Source: Dicyema japonicum (lineage: Eukaryota > Animalia > Dicyemida). Taken from it: 64,000 nt of DNA. This document shows positions 2,265 through 64,000 of the stretch, in pieces. Every line of letters begins with the position of its first letter. Position 1 is the first letter of the stretch. Made by a program: the position numbers and the translations under genes. The notes below the pieces were generated by a model. It was not told where the DNA came from and did not search any database. It saw only the letters and a program-made list of their open reading frames with translations. Location of the stretch: the NCBI GenBank assembly GCA_011109175.1, contig RDEW01000047.1, positions 144,324-208,323 on the forward strand. The letters are read 5' to 3'.

Positions 2265-3061
2265 TTAGCTTTCGGGTTTAGAGCCTTCCTGGCTACTCTT
2301 TTTGATGAGGAAGCAAACCCCGATAATTCCCACAATCTAAGGTAAGCGAGAATCCGACCATGAAAACGGAAAGGGCGGATAAAACACCGATAATTACAGT
2401 TAGATTCTTTGCCAAGCATCTCGTCACTACAGCAGGACATCCCTAACAAATCAATTAGTCCAGCTGTTGTAACCTCATGAAAGCTCAATGATTGAGTGCA
2501 GTTGTTACTGTCAGCGCAACATGTAAATGGGAAGACTTTCAGTTTGGCGTAGTCGAGGGAGCCGTTATTCCCCCACAACAAGAAAACTGGGTTCAAATGG
2601 AAGCAAACCAGTTTTTGCACTGTATCGACAGGAGCCACGAAATAGTAGTAGTTTTTGACCATCTTGTTGATTGTTTGAGAAATGGAGTTTAGTATTTCTT
2701 TATTTTCGACGATGAGGAAGATGAGACAGATGCAGACGAAGGAAAAGGAAACGATCAGCATTATGAGAAACTAAATGTAACACAAAGTACAAAGTATTTT
2801 GGGCATTTTGATGAGCTACACAGGATTCTCAAACCAGATATGGCCGCGAATAGATTCACGACACCAATCAGAAAGACAATCGAAACGCCAAAGTAAAAAA
2901 TGTTAGCCTTTCCAGCCGCATTTATAATATGATGTAATTTTGTAATTACAAGTGAGCCAGAGAAAAAGGCAACAAACGAGATTCCCTGTAAAATACTCTC
3001 ACTTATCTACCAGGAAAATTAACGCGTTTATGCTGATGAAAAGTTTGAAAAATTGTTTCAT
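2265..3061 (-). CDS. Tetraspanin (4 TM, large extracellular loop with CCG motif); micro-introns and one apparent homopolymer frameshift
   Basis: Manual splicing gives MKQFFKLFISINALIFL|GISFVAFFSGSLVI...GVSIVFLIGVVNLFAAISG...KYF|FLIMLIVSFSFVCICLIFL...DTVQKL|FSCCG...DY...PFTCC...FHE|GCPAVV...NLTVIIGVLSALSVFM|IVGIIGVCFLIKK...KPES*. Five GT-AG introns of 20-31 nt. Confidence 0.85.
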
Positions 3062-4071
3062 GTTGAATGTTCGATATATTTGTAATTTTATTATTTAATT
3101 GGTTTGCCATTGAAAATATTACAATTATTACATAATATTAAATATTATTAAAATTATATTAAATTATGATAGAATTCAAATTTCTAGAAATATAAAGTTT
3201 AAAAATTATCTTACAAAAAATTCTCAAATCTAATTTAAAAAAACAGCACGTGCTATCAGTCACCACTTCATGAGATTTTTAGTAGCATAATATTAACATT
3301 TTCTCAAATTATTTTCATCATTAATTCCAAAACTGATTAATTTTGTCGAAAGTAAGATTTTCCACCATCAACGTCACTGGAGTACAACAGCTGTAGTCGA
3401 AAAACAGGTTATTTAATTGAGTAGCTGTTGTGAGCTTCTCAGATGTCCATTGAATTCATAACTCTTTCATAATTCCCTTATCGATTAAGATAATTCAATA
3501 ACAAGTCCATCCATTGAGGGTTTTTTTAATTAGTACTCAACTTAAGAGATTGTCTCCCAAATCAAAATCATAGAGAGTCTCCCATAATGAGCCCTCAAGT
3601 TTTACACACTAAATATTCCAAGTATATTCTGTTACGTTTCAAACAATAGAATTAGTTAGTTACCCTAGTCTCACTGACAAGTAGAAGGTTTGAGGCTTTC
3701 AGCCACAACTGAAAGGGTTCCTATAAATCCATCAAAGTTCGAGAAGTCCAAAATTTGAGAAAATATCTTTAAAGAGCGATAGATTGGTTTTTTCAAAGAA
3801 CGAATCTAAAATTGTTTGTACATTGAAAAGCCTTAGTGAATCAGGGAGAGAACTCAGTGTAGGTCCCTTTGTCAGTGGATGTCAAAAATATCATTATGAT
3901 CCAGCAGATGTAAGAGTGCGATCTGAATAGGTTTGTTGATGCTAAAGGATACGAGGATAGGAATCTGAGGGAGTCGACTGAGATTAATGAAATAGTCAGA
4001 GGAAGAACAAATAGTTCATCAAGAAAATTGTATACAGCCAATTTGAGGATGAACTGAGATCGGAAGGACTC

Positions 4072-7000
4072 TTTTTGGTGAGGTGGTGACGAGGCTCGTT
4101 ACTTAATTGGATAACAGTTGAGAAAAAAAGTCTAAAAAACACTCATTATACAACCGATAACTCAGGCTAATGACGTTCAACGTACGTGGAATATCGAAAG
4201 ATTGGACAAGGAAAGTACTTTGTGACGATCTCGAAAAATACAAAATATCTATTGGCTGCCTACAAGAGACAAAAATCGAAAATGGACGCGATGAGACATG
4301 GAACAACTACCGACTGATTCTCTTCCCAACTGAATGCAATGGGATTTGCCTTACACGTGATTACCTCAAAAAATTGCATCGATATTGGAGAGTCAACGAC
4401 CGAATATGTGTCCTACAAATCAAAGTAAATGAACTATGCCCGTCCAAGTCTATTAACTGTCATAAATGTCTATGCATCACACTGTGGACGAGTAATCAAG
4501 AACCCCGGTGAGCTCGAGGAATTCTACTCAGAACTATCAAGCACATACTCTAATAATGCTTTCCTTGTCTTTGTTGCGGGAGATATGAATGGAAAGGCCG
4601 GAATGCGAATGGGGCCCGAAGAATCCTCTATTGGAAGACACGTGCGCGGAAGGAGAAATGCATCTGGAGCCTCTCTGGTGAACTTCTGCGAGGCAAATAG
4701 CCTATTCCTATGCAACACGGCCTTCACGCACTCAGCTTGCCACAAGACGACGTGGCACGGACAAAGAAAAAACTCTGTCGGAAGACCGTGAATATATATA
4801 ATCAAATCGACTACATTATCTGCCGAAAGTCTGATAAACACTTGCTAAATGATGCACGTTCCTACCAGGGGACAACAACTGACAGCGACCACAGGATCGT
4901 CATTGCAAAACTTTGTGTAAAAAAGCAGCCTGGTGGCATAGTGGTTAGGTGTCGCGCTAAAGTGGCTTAGGTCACGGGTTCGATTCTCGCTGCTGTTCAC
5001 TTGAGGAAGGTTCCATCATCTACGACGAAAGTGACACGCATCAGTGGAGATTCACTGCTCAACTAGATAGTCAAAAGGACATACACACAAGAAAAAGAAA
5101 AAAAAAGAAGTGAAGAGCATCCTTGGTTTTCCCTTACGATTAGTTATAATAACTGTTCTTTACTTAATAAAGTGTGTGTTCTGCACGAGCGAAACCCTAG
5201 GATTTACGTGCTTATGGCAATGCGGTAGTGCTTAAAAAAGCACCTGACTGGGAAAAAATACATTGAAAACGCGAAGAAGGCGAGACAAAGGCCCAATATA
5301 TACTTTCAGACAGAAAAATTGTGGTTAGAGCCCACTTATAGAGCTAAATATCACGAACAAATCGAGACTCTTATGAAGAAAACCGAACCGGAATCATCAG
5401 GATCAAACAAAGCAGGTAATCTCCATGTCGGCCAATACATGCCTTGGAGTCCAAAATCATCACGCTTAAAATTGGATCACCACCCGAACGTGCTAGATAT
5501 GGCAAAGCATTGCAGAGAGCTACGGCTAAAAGCGGCATCAGACGAGAATATAAAAAAGAGCTTAATATCCAACAAAGGAAACTAAAGTGGAAAATCAAAC
5601 AGATGAATAAAAAACACTCGCGGGAAATTATTACATCCCTATTAAAAGAAGTGGAATGCCTAAAGGACAATTTAAGGATGTTTGCGGTTTTGCGGACTAA
5701 GAAAAGACGAAACACCCTTCACATCAAGGACAAAGATGGAAAATTCGTGGGTAGCCCGAAAGAAAAGGCAGAATTGATTGCACGACACTTCGAAACAATG
5801 TTGAATACAGAAAATAAGACTTTCCCCTTTCCAGGAGAACAAAAGGCACAAAAATCCAGTCACAGTAGAAAGGTGGAATTAGCGATAAATAAACTGAAGA
5901 ACAACAAAAGTGCGGGCCAAAAAAACTTAGCGACAGAATTGCAAAAACCCTAAATAACATCTTTGAAACTAATACCGAACTAGGACTTGGAAATGGATTA
6001 TTAATACCCATACAAAAACCGAACAAAGCAAAAGGACCAGTATAAAATCTCTGCCCGATAATACTTCTGAATTCGATACGCAAGGTGCTGTCAAACATTG
6101 CACTAAGCCGGATAAAGGGTGTGGCGGATCTATACCTACCAGCAAGTCACAGTTGGTTCCGAGTAGGGAGGTATACGGCAAACATTGTATGGAGCCATAG
6201 ATGGCGGTGCGCAACGCACTAAAGATTCAAGAGCGCAACGACCGTTTGGGAATAGATCTCTCCAGAGCTTTTGACTCAATAAACAGACAGAAACTGATGA
6301 ATGTGCTTGAGCAAATATTGGATGAATCGTCGGTTAGGATAATCAGACTACTACTTGCGAACACAAGACAATCTGTGAGGACAGAAGGAGCAACTTCCCG
6401 CAGTTTCAAAACAACGATTGGGACACCCCAGGGTGATTCCCTCTTCCCTTTACTATTCACCATATACCTTGAATCTGCACTCCGCGACCTCCGTAAATGC
6501 TATATAGGAGACATAGAAGAGACATCTTATGCGGATGATGTGGATTTTGTATCACGGGATGTGACCGCACTCCAACACCTGCTAGAAAATGCACCTGCGG
6601 AGCTTGAGAAATGGTTTCTCAGCGTAAATGTTAACAAAACTGAAATTACGGAAATCAAAAGAGAAGACGATATTACTCATGAAAGATGGAGACGTACTAA
6701 TAAGCTCGGCTCTCTACTAGGAGACGCTGAAGATGTACTAAGGAGGAAAACACTGGCAAATGCGGCAATGGCTAAACTGAAGAAAGGATGGCTAAGGGCC
6801 AAAGGACTTGGAATTGACATCAGATGCAGGCTTTACAACGCGTTTGTGAAACCGATCCTACTGTACAACGCTGGGACATGGGGAAGTTCCTTCAACGAAC
6901 TATTGAAACTGGATTCGTTCCATAAAAGGCAACTAAGAAGCTTACTCGGAATGGAATGGCCACGTAGAATATCAACCACTGGTATCTACAACAAGTGGAT

Positions 7001-7347
7001 GTGTTCTTACATCAGCAAAAATGTGATAGATGCCCGGTGGAGGCTATTTGGGCATGTACTAAGAATGAACCCGGACGCACCCCCTAACAAAGCGATGGAA
7101 GATTACTTTAACAGTTGCGACAAACCCTTCTGTGGACGACCTAGATCGACACTTTTAACTGCCTTAAAAAAAGACCTAAATCGTGTGAGAAAAAATCTAA
7201 AGACGGGGACGACCTGGACGAATTGAGATCACTCGCATTCGACAGAGGAAAATGGAAAAGATTAACTATAAATATTGTTTCTTTGAGTGTTGCACATGCG
7301 GGGCTATAAATATTATGGCTTTCGTGAAAGTGCCATAATAATAATAA
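4072..7347 (+). mobile_element. Near full-length degenerate RTE-like LINE (APE endonuclease + RT), interrupted by a SINE
   Basis: APE motifs TFNVRG, GCLQETK, INVYA, AGDMNGK, NQIDYI, SDH; RT motifs DLSRAFDSI, GTPQGDSL.PLLF, YADD. Several stops and frameshifts; 3' hairpin plus (TAA)n tail at 7296-7347. Confidence 0.9.
4928..5232 (+). mobile_element. tRNA-derived SINE inserted in the RTE LINE (alternative 3' tail)
   Basis: A box tggcatagtgg and B box ggttcgattc; 10-bp TSD taaaaaagca (4918-4927, 5233-5242); body homologous to the copies at 20099 and 35890. Confidence 0.85.
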
Positions 7348-7599
7348 AAGTCCACCAAAAAAGAAACGTGTCAAACACTATTTAGCAAGTGATCCCAGCT
7401 TCCACTAACATCGACATTCTCATTACATGATCGGTTATTGATCCTACGGTCGCCTAGAAGTGTCACTGAAAGTTTATGTTAAGGAACTCGACTCGGAGGG
7501 ATTGAGTTCATGAGGGGATTTATTTTTTATAAAAACTCAAGAAACCATGAGCGTTTTTCCAGGCTGATTCCCATTTTCCCAAGCTGAGAACCTAAAATT

Positions 7600-9650: not shown

Positions 9651-10998
9651 ATTGTCTTCAATAATTTCTCTAGCGCTATCTTAAAACATATAAATTTTCA
9701 TGAAATTTATAAATTTTGATTTGAAATTTTAAGAGGGTGCTTTGATTTGTTACGGAAACATAATAAAGTGCAAAACTTTAAAACACTTAAGAAGTTTTGA
9801 AAAAAAGATGACTAAACCATTAAAAGCCCCAATTTTAACTCTCATTGATTCCAAGCTTTTCTAACGAGTTTAGAGTTAATTTTGAGGACTGGGTGTACCT
9901 TCACTGAGCTCAGGCGTGTGTAGAGCCTCAACATCTTCCATTATAGACAGCTTAGTGATTAAGATGCCATACTGTGGCAAAGTTCCCTCCACATTCTGGG
10001 TTCCTCTTCCATTCTGATGCTCCTTATCTTCGTTTGTTCTATTATTGGCATCATCATATAATCAATCTGACTCAGACAACGTATAAAATGATCGTTTTCT
10101 CTCCCAATCCATTCAAGGCACTGAACACCTTCAAGGATTGGATGCTCTCTTCATTTTCCATTGATGGACTTATTTGGAATATCTCAATTTCTACGTCCGA
10201 GGATAAACCTTAACTTCTCAAAACTGCGATTTTTATGGTAGCCTTTCACTATTGTTTATTTTATTTCAGCCCATCCGCTTAGGAATGTTTCCATTACTCA
10301 CTTCAGTTTAGTCAGAACTCACACTTTATTTGAGAAGTAAAGTACATTTATGCTGATTAATCCAGACATCAAAGTTGTTCTTAACTTTTCGTTCTTCTCT
10401 CTTTTGCGTGAGTCCTAGAGACAATCCGGTTCACAGTGATGAATCACTGATGACAGCGTCACTCGTCAATCAGCCTTTCAATAAATTAGAAATGATATTT
10501 TAAGTTAGTATTTTTCCATAAATGCTATAATCACGTCCAACTGAGTCCACGTAGATTTAAAAGGTCAAATGCTAGCTTTGATGTGGGTTAACTTTTAAAT
10601 CAAAAACAACCACCAAAGTGTTTCAATCAACACTCATTCTGACAGTAAGCCACAAATTGATAAAAAGTGAATTAACATAAATTCAAGAGCTTTCAGCCTT
10701 TTGGATAGAAATACAAATTTCAGTCATCGACTCATTTACTAGGAATCGTGTTTGATATTTTATTTATTACACCCGGTCCCTTCGAGTTAGAAACCGGTGG
10801 CTAACAAGGACGTCACAGCCAAAAATGGACACCCCAGACATCCGACAGGTATATTTGGTTCTGAGCAGAACTCGCGTGTTTGATTATATTCATACTTTAC
10901 GCCGCTAGCTCCGACATGAGAATGAGTATAAATAGAAAACTGTCGTGTTTAGGCTTTATTAAGATGTCTATTTGTATTTGAGTTTCTGGTGATTATAG

Positions 10999-20098: not shown

Positions 20099-20450
20099 AA
20101 TAATAATAATAAAAGTCTTTTCACAAGAGCCATAATGTTTATAGCTCCGCATAGGCAGGACACACACTTTTATTTAAATAAAAAACAGTTAATTTTAACT
20201 AATCGTAGAACCAAGGAATGATATTCACTTTTTTTATCTTTTTCTTGTGTGTGGGTCCTTTCTAGACAANTTGTGTGTGGGTCCTTTCTAGACAATCCAG
20301 TTCCGCAGTAAGTATCCAATGATGACGGCGTCACTCGTCAAACCCTTTAGCATCGTAAATTCGTGGAACCTTCCACCAGGTGAACAGCAGCGAGAATCGA
20401 GCCCCTAACCTAAGTCAGTTTAGCCCGACACCTAACCACTATGCCACCCG
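20099..20450 (-). mobile_element. tRNA-derived SINE, full length, RTE-like tail
   Basis: Minus-strand head ggtggcatagtggttaggtgtcgggct...gctcgattctcgctgctgttcacc; 12-bp TSD gacggtggtttt (20087-20098, 20451-20462); (TTA)n tail. Confidence 0.9.
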
Positions 20451-20614
20451 GACGGTGGTTTTCTGGTTCAATAAATTCTAATTTAATTTAATGGGAGTAT
20501 GAATACATAACTCAAATATTATTATTTATTAATTGGTTTTGTTAAAATAATTTAAATGTAAATTTAATAATTTAAGGATAATATAAACTACGTGTCAATA
20601 ATTTTCATTTACTA

Positions 20615-33149: not shown

Positions 33150-35029
33150 TCAATCACCACCCTTTATTTTTGGTGAGATTTACTTGACATCTTTTTTGAC
33201 AATCAGGTTCAGCTATTCGTGTAGTTCCGACTTTGTTTAAAGCGGATAAATTTTCAGCAGTGAGTCTTGTTATTTGAGCAGTTATTGTCAATTTCATAAA
33301 TGGGGGAAGCTGCTCACACACATATGTCGAACCAAACAAAAATGATTTCTGTCGCAAAATTAAAGTTTTTAAACTTTCCAGGAAAATATGAAAAGAAAGC
33401 AGGTATTCCAACCTCCAAAGGAAAATATGAAAAGAAAGCAGGTATTCCAACCTCCATTTACAAGAGTTCCATTTGTAAGCTTTCATCTCCTCTTCATTTC
33501 GTCTGTGTTTGGCCTTTCATTTCCATAAATAGAATTATTTCCAGTCTCAACAAATAAAATCTTTTAACTACTTTGTGAAGTAATAACCAGCGAACTGGAG
33601 TATAAAAATGTCGATGAACTGGTTATTCATATCTATCAGCTGTTTACTAAACTGTCGGTGGTTGAGGGAATGATTTCGGATATATTTTACTGTTTTGTAA
33701 CCAATCTAATCGTATTTTCCACTTTTAAAATTTTTTAACACAAATTTTGCTGATGAATAATACACTGAAAGTGAACAACGATGACCCGGGATTTAACTTT
33801 TCTATTTCAGCTCGCAATTTGGCAGCAACAACAGCATCCAACCATATTCTGAGCACCTTCGGGGCAAAAACATACAGACTTCTTTAAATCAAATACAGTC
33901 AAAGAGAATTTGTAGTCGTTTTACAAAAATATCTTATCGTGCATTGGTACCAGTTCGAGAAATTCTTCATAAATATTAAAATCTGAATCACGGGGTCTAA
34001 CAAACATTGCTAATTGTGCAATTCCACCAACGTCTACTCTTTCATCGATCGCAATTGAAAAATAGTCAAATTTTAAAAATTCAGACTTTAGTTAGTATTT
34101 CAAAGACATTTCATTAATGAGTTTAGCAACAGTGTTTCTGGTCAATGAAATATCTAGACGAGTGGGCGTTGTCTGGACAAATAATTTTTGCTGTTTTATA
34201 AGGCATTGTTAGATGAAATCACCATCGCAATATGATTTTCCTGCTGATTTCATAGCTTGCACTAACTGAGTACTTCGAAATGTAACGTAGTTAAATTTTT
34301 TCGCAATTCATTTAGATAAAACCCCGTTAGACCTTCTTGGTTAATATTCAACTTATATAATTAGATTGGTAATGTCTTGTTATATTGTAGTCTTTCGGTA
34401 TAGCGATTAACTGGTTGCACATCAAACAATATATTTTTCCATCAACCGTTGTGCAAGAATAAATTACCATTTATATTGAAACACTCTCATTTCATATCAA
34501 ACGCCGTTCAGAAAAAAACAAGATTTACAAATACTATTAAAAATTTAATTAAATGTAAAAAAATAACAAAATGAATTCTGTGTTTTATAGAAATTAAATC
34601 GGTCCGCACTTATGCTTGTCAAAGTCCGCAAAAGATGTCACCCATTCCGGAAAAAAGCCACCAACTTTTCNCCAAGGAATGATCTTCACTTCTTTTTTTC
34701 TTTTTCTTGTGTGAGTGTCCTTTCTAGACAATCCAGTTCCCAGTAAGTTTCCACTGATGACGGCGTCACTCGTCAAACCCTTTACAAATACTATTAAAAA
34801 TTTAATTAAATGTAAAAAATAACAAAATGAGTTTTGTGTTTTATAGCCATTAAATCGGTCCGCACTTATGCTTGTCAAAGTTCGCAAAAGATGTCACCCA
34901 TTCCGGAAAGGAACGAAAAGAGCCACCAAATTCTCCCCACCACTTGGGGGTTCCCGTAACTTATGTCTAATAAGGTCCGCATGAGGGCCGCACATATGCT
35001 TGTCGAGTGCCGCATGGTTGACACCCCTG
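33150..35029 (-). mobile_element. Degenerate hAT (SPIN/Buster/GTF2IRD2-like) DNA transposon with one recognisable terminus
   Basis: FDYFSIAIDERVDVGGIAQLAMFVR...FNIYEEFLELVPMH transposase motif near 33950-34080. Terminus caggggtgtcaaccatgcggc...tgcggccc starts at 35029 on the minus strand. Confidence 0.75.
34672..34792 (-). mobile_element. Central-domain fragment of the tRNA-derived SINE
   Basis: ccaaggaatgatcttcac...tcctttctagacaatccagttcc...gatgacggcgtcactcgtcaaaccc matches 35997-36103; begins at an N junction. Confidence 0.7.
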
Positions 35030-35889
35030 CAGTAGCGTAATCCAACTTCCATCGGACTGCAAATTCTATGGAAAGGGTTTCGCTGTGCACATAGTTATAA
35101 AAACCTGGAGAATTTGGACGCTTTACGAAAAACTTGCCAAGATTGTATCTCACCTGAAGTTTTCCTCGTTTCTCTTTATTGCGGGCGATTGGAATGATAA
35201 GTTGACTTGAAAAAGTTAAATTACATTTGAGCGTGTGGGTCAGAACGGATCTTTCAAAAAGCGTATCAAATGTAGAAGAAAAAAGCTACAGGGATGTGAT
35301 GTTAACGCTTTTACTTGAATCTGGAGACGGTTCTTGAGGACAACAGATTTCCTACTACCTGTCAAAATTAAAAATTTGTTGATGTATCGAGTTCAAATAA
35401 TCTGCAGAAATTCATTTGCGTATTCTGGAAACTCTCTGATGCGATTTTTATCAGTTATAAAAGAAAATATAGAATTTTTTTACAAAACCACGTTATTAAA
35501 ACATCCAAAGTGATAAATTAGTAATCAACTCCCGTGATTGGCTGCATTTTCTTACGATTTGTATTGAAATGCGTTCAATCAACCATCCCTCTTTTTGGCT
35601 GTCCCCCATCCTATTTGCTATCAACGATTCGATAGAACGTAGCCAGGAAAGCGAGTTGGATCATAGAATCCCGAGGTTATGTATTCAACGGACTGGATAA
35701 TTTACTCTTCTTTAGGTCGCATATTCTTTTCTCTAATGGTTCTAACTCTCGCTGAAGACGATTCTGGGTGAATGTCTGTAATCGTTATCCTGGTCAAAAA
35801 ATTCAAAGATTTACTAAAAATTTTGTCCAAATGCCCTAATCATGCAAATTAAATCTAAGTAACCCTGTTTCTAGGTTATGCAGTATAAT

Positions 35890-36205
35890 AATAATAAAGC
35901 CTTTTCACGAGAGCCATAGTATTTATAGCTCCGCATAGGCAGGACACACACTTTATTTAAGTAAAGTACAGTTAATTTTAACTAATCGTGTAGAACCAAG
36001 GAATGATCTTCACTTATTTTTTATTTTTCTCATGTGAGTGTCCTTTCTAGACAATCCAGTTCCGCAGTGAGTATTCACTGATGACGGCGTCACTCGTCAA
36101 ACCATTTCTGCATCGTAGATGCGTGGAACCTTCCACCAGGTGAACAGCAGCGAGATTCGAACCCGTAGCCTAAGCCACTTAAACCCGACATCTAACCACT
36201 AAGCC
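35890..36205 (-). mobile_element. tRNA-derived SINE, full length, RTE-like tail
   Basis: Minus-strand head tggcttagtggttag...gggttcgaatctcgctgctg; 12-bp TSD atgcagtataat (35878-35889, 36206-36217); (TTA)n tail. Confidence 0.9.
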
Positions 36206-44224: not shown

Positions 44225-44330
44225 CATTTCAAAGACTCAAAAAGAAAAAAGAAGTCAAAGAATTCCCTGGTTCTCCCTTTCTACGATTAGTTATTATAAC
44301 TGTTTTTTATTAAAATAAAGTGTGTGTTTT
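44225..44330 (+). mobile_element. 3' half of the SINE central domain
   Basis: aagaaaaaagaagt...cctggtt...tacgattagttattataactg...aaataaagtgtgtgtt matches 5090-5180. Confidence 0.65.
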
Positions 44331-44519
44331 GTCTGGACCTATAGCTAAAATGGAGTTTTTTATAGTACAGGCGCTAACAATTTATTTTATATATCACCAC
44401 CAGGTAAAACCAGCACAGAGGCCTCACAATTGAATAATTCTTACATGCCACTGATTATTTCCAAAACTAATCTTGCCTGTTTCGGTTTAGATTCTTAGCT
44501 TATTAAAGAGAAAATAATT

Positions 44520-61814: not shown

Positions 61815-64000
61815 TTTTTGGTGAGGTGGTGACGTGCCTCGTTTCTTGATTGGATCGCAATTGAGAAAAATGTCTAAAAGGCAATGGATACAAAGGGATG
61901 CATCTAGTATAAAAGTTCTTACGTTCAATGCTAGAGGCTTATCTACGACCTGGTCGAGGAAGATTCTCTGTGATGACCTGGAGAGATACGACGTATTTAT
62001 TGGGTACTTACAAAAAACGAAAGTTACTTGTAGCCTTGATGAGAACTTTGGCGAATATCGAATTATATGTCAGCCGAGCGACTCAAAACATTATGGACTT
62101 GGATTTGCCATCCACTCAAAGTTGACAAGTGCAGTCCACCGTATATGTAGTGTGAATGACAAGATCTGTGTTATACAAACCGACTTACCACCTTCGAAGA
62201 GCTTTCTGACAATTGTAAATGTTTATGCGCCACACTGCGAAAGAGTAGCGAAAGATCCGACAGAACTAGACGACTTCTATTCAACACTGTTACGGACGTA
62301 CAACGAATATGAGTCGTCATCACTAATACTCATTGCTGGGGATTTGAATGCAAAAGTCGGGATGAAGAATAACCCGGATGATGTTTTCTTGGGAGAACAT
62401 GGACGTGGAATAAGAAATTTACCCGGGACAATACTTGGTCACTTTTGTATGGCAAACAACCTTTTCCTATGCAATACTGCATTTACGCATCCTGCCTGCC
62501 ACAAAACTACGTGGATGGGGAAGCGAAGGAACTCAGAAGGAAAGCTGGTTCCAATATACAACCAAATCGATTATGTCATATGCCGGGCTAAAGACAAACA
62601 CCTTCTAGTAAACGCACGTTCATATGAAGGTTCGACGACTGTCAGCGACCACAAGATGGTTATTGCGACCTTCACCCTGAAAAAACATGCCACTAAATAC
62701 AGGAATGCAAAAAATCACGAATTTGAAAAAATCAGAGGCGACTACGCGACTGAAAGGCTGATTTCTCAACCGGAGATTACTGAGAGATATCAACAATACA
62801 TTCAGACTAATTTGCAGGACGTATTGGTGGATACCACGCTAGAAGACGCCTGGAAACGCACAAAGGACACCATCAACGAAGCTGCTGAAGCATGTCTTGG
62901 CAAAAGGGAGAATAGTAAAATGCACCTGAAGGCTATTCATCCAGATGTTCCCGAGCTTGCGAAAAGTCTAAAAGAAATAAATATGAGAAAATCAAATGCC
63001 ACTGACACTAATGCGATAAAAGCCCTTCAAGGCGAAAGACAACGTGTCAGAAGAAAAATAAAGGGTCTGAACAAGAAGCTTTTCATAGAAGAAATAGCCT
63101 CCTGTATAGAAGAAGTAAACAAAGTGAAAGACAACGCACAGGTGTACGTCGCTGCCCGTTTGTTGCGGCGAACAAACCAAAGTCGACTAACCATAAAAGA
63201 CGAGAACGGTAAGCTGATACTGAACACCAAAGAACAAACTGAAGCCATCGCGGCTCACTTTGAGAAGCTTTTCAACATCAAAACCATAGAAATCCACCCA
63301 TTTGATGGAAGGCCAAGACATTACGCAAAGTCTGGGCAAACATTGTGCTTGAACGAATAAAAGGACCTGCTTACAAATACCTATCAGATAGTCAAAGTGG
63401 TTTTCGAGAAGGGAGATCCACAGCTGATGCGGTCTGGAGTCACAGACGGAGGTGTGCAACATATCAAAGATACCGTAACGCCACCAATATTTTGGGAATT
63501 GACCTATCAAGAGCTTTTGATACGGTTAACAGGAACAAATTAATGGGGGTACTGAGCGGATTTCTTGATGAATCGAGTCTAAGGATGATCCGAATTCTAC
63601 TTTCTAACACTGAGCTCCTTGTGAGAGTCGGAAAAACCTATTCAAGAAAATTTGAAACAAATACGGGCACTCCACAAGGAGACTCTCTTTCTCCTCTACT
63701 ATTCACAATTTATTTGGAAGCCGCTATGAGGGAACTTAGACCGTCATACCAAGGAAAGACGGAAGAAGTAATCTACGCGGACGATGTAGACCTAATTTCT
63801 GAAGACAAAGAGGTCCTGGAAAACCTATTAGAAAAAGCACCAGATGTACTAGGGAAATGGTTTCTTACTGTGAACAGAGAAAAAACAGAACTCACAGAGA
63901 TAAGAAGGATGAGTAACGTCCTAGAAGAGAAGTGGCGACAAGTAAAGAAACTCGGTTCACTTATGGGAGATAGCGAAGATATTTTACGTAGGAAAACTCT
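61815..64000 (+). mobile_element. RTE-like LINE, 5' part (long open APE ORF, start of RT); runs off the window
   Basis: 508-aa ORF 61834-63360 with TFNARG, LQKTK, VNVYAP, AGDLNAK, NQIDY, SDH; then GTPQGDSLSPLLF and YADD after short frameshifts. Confidence 0.92.

Follow-up and report, generated by a model that had tools for sequence, protein, structure and literature searches.

In this work, we show that a 64,000-nucleotide stretch of the genome of Dicyema japonicum (hereafter the window; contig RDEW01000047.1 of assembly GCA_011109175.1, positions 144,324 to 208,323 of the forward strand) carries copies of a family of short interspersed elements (SINEs), here called SINE1, in which a shared head and body are joined to at least three different 3' tails. 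Based on our data, SINE1 is very probably a nonautonomous retrotransposon of ~330 nt that was recently active and whose tails were exchanged between modules derived from long interspersed elements (LINEs). The family has the attributes expected of a SINE, being short (~330-344 nt), noncoding, dispersed, present in many copies and flanked by target-site duplications. An initial annotation, made from the letters of the window alone, had proposed a single SINE head and body joined at a fixed junction to different LINE tails. Our analysis bears this proposal out, since the bodies associated with the two main tails, A and B, are ~93% identical, the tails themselves occur in many copies and a LINE was found for each of them.

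Three copies of SINE1 lie in the window, and we refer to them as copy A (the locus at 4928), copy B (20099) and copy C (35888). Their positions are given below, together with those of the LINE that harbors copy A and of the partial SINE copies.

4928..5232, + strand: SINE1 copy A with tail A, 89.5% identical to positions 1-332 of the tail A subfamily consensus
4928 to ~4998, on to 5182, and 5183-5231, + strand: subdivision of copy A into tRNA-like head, body and tail A hairpin
4918-4927 and 5233-5242, + strand: target-site duplication of copy A, taaaaaagca, from direct reading and a duplication search
20452-20099, - strand: SINE1 copy B, ending in tail B with (TTA)n; identity to the tail B subfamily consensus 87.9%
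Flanks of 20099..20452: target-site duplication of copy B, 12 bp, aaaaccaccgtc
36205-35888, - strand: SINE1 copy C, ending in tail B with (TTA)n; identity to the tail B subfamily consensus 92.9%
Flanks of 35888..36205: target-site duplication of copy C, 10 bp, tatactgcat
4077..7349, + strand: full-length copy of LINE-B, RTE-like, 92-93% identical to the full-length genomic copy L097 and split by the SINE insertion 4928-5242
7292..7333, + strand: 3' hairpin of LINE-B, gcac...gtgc, the source type of tail B, whose SINE1 consensus it matches at 94% identity across 34 nt
7307-7309, + strand: stop codon of the LINE-B open reading frame (ORF)
7335-7349, + strand: (TAA)n repeat of LINE-B
34672..34784, - strand: internal fragment of a SINE1 body of tail B type, ending at an N, 95.6% identical to positions 106-218 of the tail B consensus
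44239..44385, + strand: 5'-truncated SINE body (44239-44331) followed by a unique tail to 44385, found by within-window BLAST
10281..10469, - strand: 5'-truncated copy of an older related SINE family, its best match being the family of L077, tail included (69% over 207 nt)

All three copies announced by the initial annotation, at 4928(+), 20099(-) and 35890(-), were recovered, and their duplications of 10-12 bp can be read in the window. Copy A ends in a short A-rich stretch without (TTA)n, which is atypical beside the tail A consensus, and copy C is short by ~7 nt at its 5' end. Copy B measures 354 nt, its excess length being a 25-nt duplication on both sides of a single N, which is an assembly artefact. 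Single Ns inside SINE copies were seen at 20270-20320 (- strand) and at 34672, one with the 25-nt duplication and the other truncating the copy; both are assembly joins in repeats. Within-window BLAST also returned partial copies at 44239-44331, 34784-34672 and 10469-10309. The two partial copies noted earlier, at about 10410-10470 and at 34672, were both located, the former (10469-10281) belonging to the older related family.

Searches of the assembled genome (67,542,437 bases in 377 contigs; the GC content of the window is ~38%) returned ~2000 first-look candidates for copy A and likewise ~2000 for copy B. At least 40 near-full-length genomic matches were scored for each of the two, and those of copy A include its tail, at 81-88% identity. 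The junction word AAATAAAGTGTGTGT, a 15-mer, has 1013 exact occurrences in the genome, compared with none for its reversed control. Because this exact word is retained in only 45 of 60 full-length copies sampled, the 3'-complete copies of SINE1 probably total ~1300-1500. Sequences sampled amount to ~0.3 Mb of the 67.5 Mb genome. Some tail A copies recur every 7.2-9.2 kb with identical flanks, as at G000:C343:159683, 166973 and 174204, and further recurring tail A copies were seen at C338:209766 and 218987 (L004 and L009) and at L016 and L017. These are tandem or segmental duplications, which slightly inflate the copy counts.

For each type, a consensus was derived from 30 fetched genomic copies, giving 344 nt for the tail A type and 330 nt for the tail B type. 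The two consensus sequences are ~93% identical over head and body, until ...aataaagtgtgtgtYctgc, and unrelated beyond that point. Sampled copies match their own consensus at 93.5% (tail A type) and 95.7% (tail B type), the best of each reaching 99.4%, and a crude search found target-site duplications of at least 7 bp (range 7-18, median ~11 bp) in 33 of the 60. Since (TTA)n ends both consensus sequences, this repeat is not a feature of tail B only, as had first been supposed.

Immediately before the tail, the body ends in aataaagtgtgtgt. Among the first 100 junctions, tail B follows ~72 and tail A 16, and ~6 belong to a third class, C, whose tail starts with ctgcctgaggggagcgata...; the remainder are rare or single forms. 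The core of tail A has 189 matches in the genome at up to two mismatches, against none for a control, and these matches include recurrent variants at the first two bases, which mark other contexts. A single occurrence of the alternative tail, which would have refuted the initial annotation, is therefore clearly not what the genome shows. The fragment at 44225, in which a possible third tail had been seen, fared differently: a real third class exists, namely class C at ~6% of junctions, but the fragment itself is unique and decayed. The 25 nt that follow 44331 have no second occurrence in the genome at up to three mismatches in 25 nt, and with this single occurrence the 44331 tail was rejected as a recurrent third class. 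It has tgtctg and atagct.a.atgg in common with class C tails and looks like a decayed class C copy.

Tail classes could be matched to LINE 3' ends, tail A to LINE-A and tail B to LINE-B. LINEs of the RTE type measure ~3-3.3 kb and have a single ORF encoding an N-terminal apurinic/apyrimidinic endonuclease and a reverse transcriptase, without a separate ORF1. LINE-B has this architecture. Its genomic copies begin sharply at one point, window 4072-4077, and also stop at one 3' end; these limits define an element of 3.05 kb with a 5' untranslated region (UTR) of ~50 nt and duplications of its own. Pieces of its ORF contain Exo_endo_phos and RVT_1 domains (RVT_1 and Exo_endo_phos_2 in a Pfam search of the window copy), and the ORF is presumably single and uninterrupted, the sampled copies being frameshifted. 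Protein relatives of LINE-B are ~1000 aa long, combine endonuclease and reverse transcriptase, lie on contigs of 3.0-3.7 kb and come from oomycetes, gastropods, amphioxus and Octopus sinensis, under generic database names. The named relative of highest identity to the LINE-B reverse transcriptase is P0078, Octopus sinensis LOC115230848, with 55% over 59% of the query. Dicyemids are parasites of cephalopods, and this protein comes from the host species of the dicyemid, but it is too distant to suggest a recent transfer.

The tail of copies B and C had been described as RTE-like with (TTA)n, and it indeed matches the 3' end of the RTE-like LINE-B: a match of 34 nt links it with 7296-7329 in within-window BLAST, and tail B is 88-94% identical to LINE-B ends over 34 nt. 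The tail of the 4928 copy had been regarded as an unrelated hairpin. This view has to be abandoned, because the ends of a second RTE-like LINE, LINE-A, match tail A and the LINE-A protein resembles that of LINE-B. CGGCAC variants of the tail A core are the 3' ends of LINE-A, whose coding end continues directly into tail A. Compared with these LINE-A ends, the tail A consensus of SINE1 shows 92-98% identity along 43-53 nt (E-values down to 5e-17). The endonuclease and reverse transcriptase of LINE-A show 36-45% protein identity to those of LINE-B. On these comparisons, tail A is the corresponding part of a LINE related to LINE-B, with the same stem-loop layout. LINE-B is young and LINE-A is older.

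Two further LINEs were observed. Upstream of a LINE-A end, L063 (G000:C2:289910-290510, minus strand) has the 3' end of a third LINE type, with the tail cacggcacaagggaaacttaactaatttatgttttctcgggagtgc; no match of this tail to any SINE tail was seen. Within the window, another RTE-like LINE occupies 61820-63712 (+ strand) and reaches the window end. It is ~66% identical to LINE-B in DNA and probably belongs to another family.

The module shared by LINE and SINE consists of approximately the last five codons, the stop codon and the short 3' UTR, given that the long ORF of L097 ends at 3071, within the tail match at 3061-3094, and that the LINE-A homology extends to the start of tail A. It corresponds to a stem-loop of 45-50 nt within a common region of ~50-60 nt, the LINE stop codon lying inside the hairpin, with ~30-40 nt from the stop to (TAA)n or (TAAC)n. 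The predicted fold of all tails is a single long hairpin, imperfectly paired, with a 4-bp outer stem, gcac...gtgc, and the microsatellite follows directly. The outer stem reads gcac/gtgc in LINE-B and gcct/aggc in SINE1 tail B, a difference of two compensatory pairs. Over 17 tails (SINE1-B, LINE-B and class C), 81.9% of cells pair in a hand-written structure, compared with 37-49% in slid controls. Five pairs, outer stem included, have changes on both sides, and the covariation score was reached by 2 of 500 shuffles. The hand-written structure was counted in place of that of RNAalifold, which recovered only the apical eight pairs of the B and C tails because the bulge register differs between the two classes.

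The fixed junction thus coincides with the base of the stem (ctgc/ac), at the foot of the structure by which a reverse transcriptase of the RTE type would be expected to recognize its template. Both LINE tails and the SINE have ctgcac or ctgcc in common at the junction, and ctgcac is a plausible microhomology for template switching or recombination. In every family the stretch directly before the tail, ttctttacttaaataaagtgtgtgt, is kept (e.g., 5150-5182), with a TCTTT motif, AATAAA and a GT-rich run, and it resembles a polyadenylation signal with its downstream element.

At the other end of the element, the head contains tggcatagtgg and gggttcgattc at the spacing of an A box and a B box. Compared with the genome's own tRNAs (16 anticodon types, tRNA-Glu(CTC) having been found by pattern and confirmed with ARAGORN), it gives an alignment of ~60 nt with a score of 36, whereas shuffled sequences have a mean of 18.8 and a maximum of 27. 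Global identity to the 16 sampled anticodon types is 44-51 of 72 positions. The score of 36 was obtained with tRNA-Ile, higher than the 29 of tRNA-Glu(CTC). Of the tRNA-Glu-like head for RNA polymerase III that had been proposed, the derivation from a tRNA stands and that from tRNA-Glu does not; a specific isoacceptor could not be assigned. Judged from its sequence, the head seems to be a degenerate, tRNA-derived one with A and B boxes.

SINE1 is accompanied in the genome by related families. The TTGCAC variants of the tail A core belong to SINE2, which has a different body followed by tail A and then (TTAC)n; with SINE1, this body has only the central motif (...gggtttgacgagtaacgccgtcat...) in common. 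Two clearly different tRNA-like heads were seen on the SINE2 body and tail, at L066 (G000:C54:36250-36850) and at L146 (G000:C212:809660-810250), suggesting an exchange of heads in addition to that of tails. In SINE3, which gives 291 first-look candidates with a sharp 5' end and has C- or D-type tails, a SINE1-type body is joined to another head; the heads of SINE1 and SINE3 were either swapped or diverged from one ancestor. An older family, found at window 10469-10281 and at L077, has the tail ...gtaatggaaacattcct.... The genome therefore holds a mosaic of head, body and tail modules, since tails and the central motif occur on SINE families with different heads.

The order of the exchanges can be read from the heads and bodies. 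In a tree of these sequences (FastTree, midpoint rooting), the full-length tail B copies form one tight clade inside a grade of tail A copies, and C- or D-tailed copies with other heads lie further out. Bodies of the tail B type have a derived 6-nt deletion relative to the tail A type, SINE3 and C-tailed copies. This fits a scenario in which a master copy resembling the tail A type acquired tail B once, with the largest burst coming afterwards. As copy A sits within a LINE-B copy, LINE-B had already begun to spread while the tail A subfamily was still active.

The insertion signature, measured on SINE copies, is also informative. In each of the 33 copies whose duplication is clear, its first base is A or T, partly as an artefact, because the AT-rich tail merges with the duplication and blurs its start. 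Counting from that start, T is strongly enriched at -10 (23 of the 33 copies), and G+C is near absent at -12 to -9. According to Nishiyama and Ohshima (2018, PMC6007223), about one helical turn separates the duplication start of RTE-related retroposons from a T stretch upstream of it, with which the SINE1 signature agrees, and a SINE and its RTE partner may differ in duplication profile and terminal repeat.

We suggest that SINE1, laid out as a tRNA-derived head, a conserved body of ~200 nt, a 3' LINE module and a short AT-rich terminal microsatellite, would be transcribed by RNA polymerase III, and that the reverse transcriptase of a partner LINE would recognize the stem-loop and, at a nicked target, reverse-transcribe the SINE RNA, leaving duplications of 7-18 bp. 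The hairpin module was very probably replaced several times at one point, the stem base ctgc/ac, giving separate subfamilies: older ones with C and D tails, one with tail A from LINE-A and the youngest and commonest with tail B from a LINE-B-like element. Each exchange was apparently a single event followed by amplification. Sequence relationships, copy numbers, duplications, the conserved fold and the insertion signature are observed directly; which LINE mobilizes which subfamily, and the route of exchange (template switching or recombination at ctgcac), we infer.

Several points weigh against this scenario or limit its reach. The terminal repeat tracks the SINE lineage and not the hairpin, and it mismatches the presumed partner LINEs: it is (TTA)n in SINE1 with tail A and likewise in SINE1 with tail B, (TAA)n in LINE-B, (TAAC)n in LINE-A and (TTAC)n in SINE2 with tail A. 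A simple template switch at the 3' end would bring the repeat of the LINE along with the hairpin. Possible explanations of the mismatch are fast drift in master copies, unsampled LINE variants as donors or an exchange of the hairpin cassette alone. Several bases distinguish the LINE-B hairpin from that of tail B, and divergence among the sampled LINE-B copies is lower than that of the tail B copies from their consensus, so that the true donor of tail B may be an older or unsampled relative of LINE-B. Among the sampled copies a full-length intact LINE ORF was not seen, and the assignment to the RTE clade, for which we write RTE-like, rests on architecture and insertion signature. The head is weakly tRNA-like, as the Rfam tRNA model gave no match (E up to 1) at eight SINE loci and ARAGORN, run on the window, called no tRNA in any SINE head. 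As to sampling, the 60 copies are biased, being the best matches to two window copies, and the tail census is a count by eye of only the first 100 junctions listed.

Seen from the window, the tail of the 4928 copy might pass for a one-off, brought in by a secondary insertion, a 3' transduction or a chimeric copy, as it is the single tail A copy there and its A-rich end without (TTA)n is atypical. The genome leaves practically no room for this idea: at least 40 near-full-length matches carry the tail at 81-88% identity, its core is matched 189 times against none in the control, it stands at 16 of the first 100 junctions and many tail A copies are flanked by independent duplications. It is less far-fetched, though improbable, that no exchange took place and that tails A, B and C diverged from one ancestral tail while co-evolving with a single changing LINE lineage. 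The tails do have one hairpin layout, a ctgc start and a ...tatggc... core; classes B and C are alignable and intermediates such as L075 exist; and LINE-A and LINE-B are related at 36-45% protein identity. However, the bodies are ~93% identical and the identity between A and B types falls abruptly to background at the junction, which makes gradual divergence of these two tails unlikely because such divergence would not spare the body. In addition, tail A resembles LINE-A ends (92-98% identity) much more closely than it resembles tail B, and SINE2, with its otherwise unrelated body, has tail A nearly unchanged. Between classes B and C, gradual divergence may have occurred.

A derivation of the body itself from a LINE appears slightly less probable again. 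In that case SINE1 would be bipartite like Bov-tA, a tRNA head followed by an internally deleted LINE, and the junction would be the deletion point. SINE bodies can derive in part from the 5' portions of RTE and Vingi LINEs (Kojima 2018, PMC5786205), and there is a weak likeness upstream of the junction between LINE-B (ttctttgagtgtt) and SINE1 (ttctttac...aagtgtgtgtt). Nevertheless, when both consensus sequences were compared by short-word BLAST with full-length LINE-B (six copies) and with LINE-A (five copies), no similarity appeared outside the tails, and one and the same body has tails from at least two LINE families. As the body is without a match to the 5' parts of LINE-A and LINE-B, we do not place SINE1 in the bipartite Bov-tA type. 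We see a small chance, somewhat above that of the previous alternatives, that the system holds either a previously undescribed conserved central domain or an exchange of an internal cassette, the hairpin only. The motif ...ggaaggttcc...gggYttgacgagtRacgccgtcat..., common to SINE1, SINE2 and SINE3, could be an undescribed SINE domain, possibly present in other spiralians or in the cephalopod host; no relevant paper with these motif words was found in the literature searched. The hairpin, for its part, may have been exchanged alone, with the microsatellite staying in the SINE lineage. This, if true, would point to internal recombination or gene conversion and not to the usual template switch at the 3' end.

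The exchange of tails between LINE-derived modules, which we favor for SINE1, has precedents. Tail exchange and mosaic SINE/LINE partnerships are already established, and SINE1 is a further family of that sort. Bivalve SINEs with conserved central domains use several LINE clades and have homologous tails across superfamilies (Martelossi et al. 2024, PMC11481361), and MetaSINEs were proposed to have survived by changes of partner LINE (Nishihara et al. 2016, PMC4824008). Like the bivalve mosaic SINEs and MetaSINEs, SINE1 has a tRNA-derived head, a conserved body and variable LINE-derived tails. Unlike the bivalve ones, it is hosted by a dicyemid with a reduced genome of 67.5 Mb, and both of its characterized partners are of one LINE type, RTE-like, instead of several clades. 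The 'jigsaw' SINEs described from gastropods and bivalves have modules (heads, bodies, tails) in common that are combined differently, both within one genome and between genomes (Matetovici et al. 2016, PMC4758252); going by that description, the heads, bodies and tails found in different combinations within the Dicyema genome are alike. Occasional tail exchange and the contribution of RTE elements to SINE bodies have also been documented (Kojima 2018, PMC5786205).

As in Bov-tA, AfroSINE and plant Au-like SINEs, the 3' end of SINE1 is common with a short RTE-type LINE and terminates in a microsatellite (PMC5786205), but, in contrast to Bov-tA, matches between the SINE1 body and the 5' part of its partner LINEs were not detected. 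With the RTE-dependent SINEs treated by Nishiyama and Ohshima (2018, PMC6007223), SINE1 has in common a T-rich stretch ~10 nt upstream of the duplication and microsatellites that may differ between SINE and LINE. It departs from RTE-dependent SINEs in that the region common to SINE and LINE is only ~50-60 nt long and starts within the last ORF codons. By description, Ceph-SINEs are also similar, being tRNA-derived with a conserved central domain, part of which derives from an RTE LINE (Kojima 2018, PMC5786205).

The genome of D. japonicum was reported to comprise 67.5 Mb in 377 scaffolds, with 36.7% GC and 48.9% repeats, in a paper that does not mention SINEs (PMC6736024), and no description of SINEs in dicyemids was found in the literature searched. 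SINE1, its sister families and the two RTE-like LINE partners are a visible part of the dicyemid repeat load. The general picture of SINE biology is unchanged by SINE1. What the family offers is a compact and well-sampled case of partner switching, in which the unit of exchange is delimited to one hairpin base, the stem is compensatory and the order of the subfamilies comes from the body tree. SINE1 is thus a good system for studying what an RTE reverse transcriptase recognizes, and a source of insertion markers for dicyemid phylogeny.

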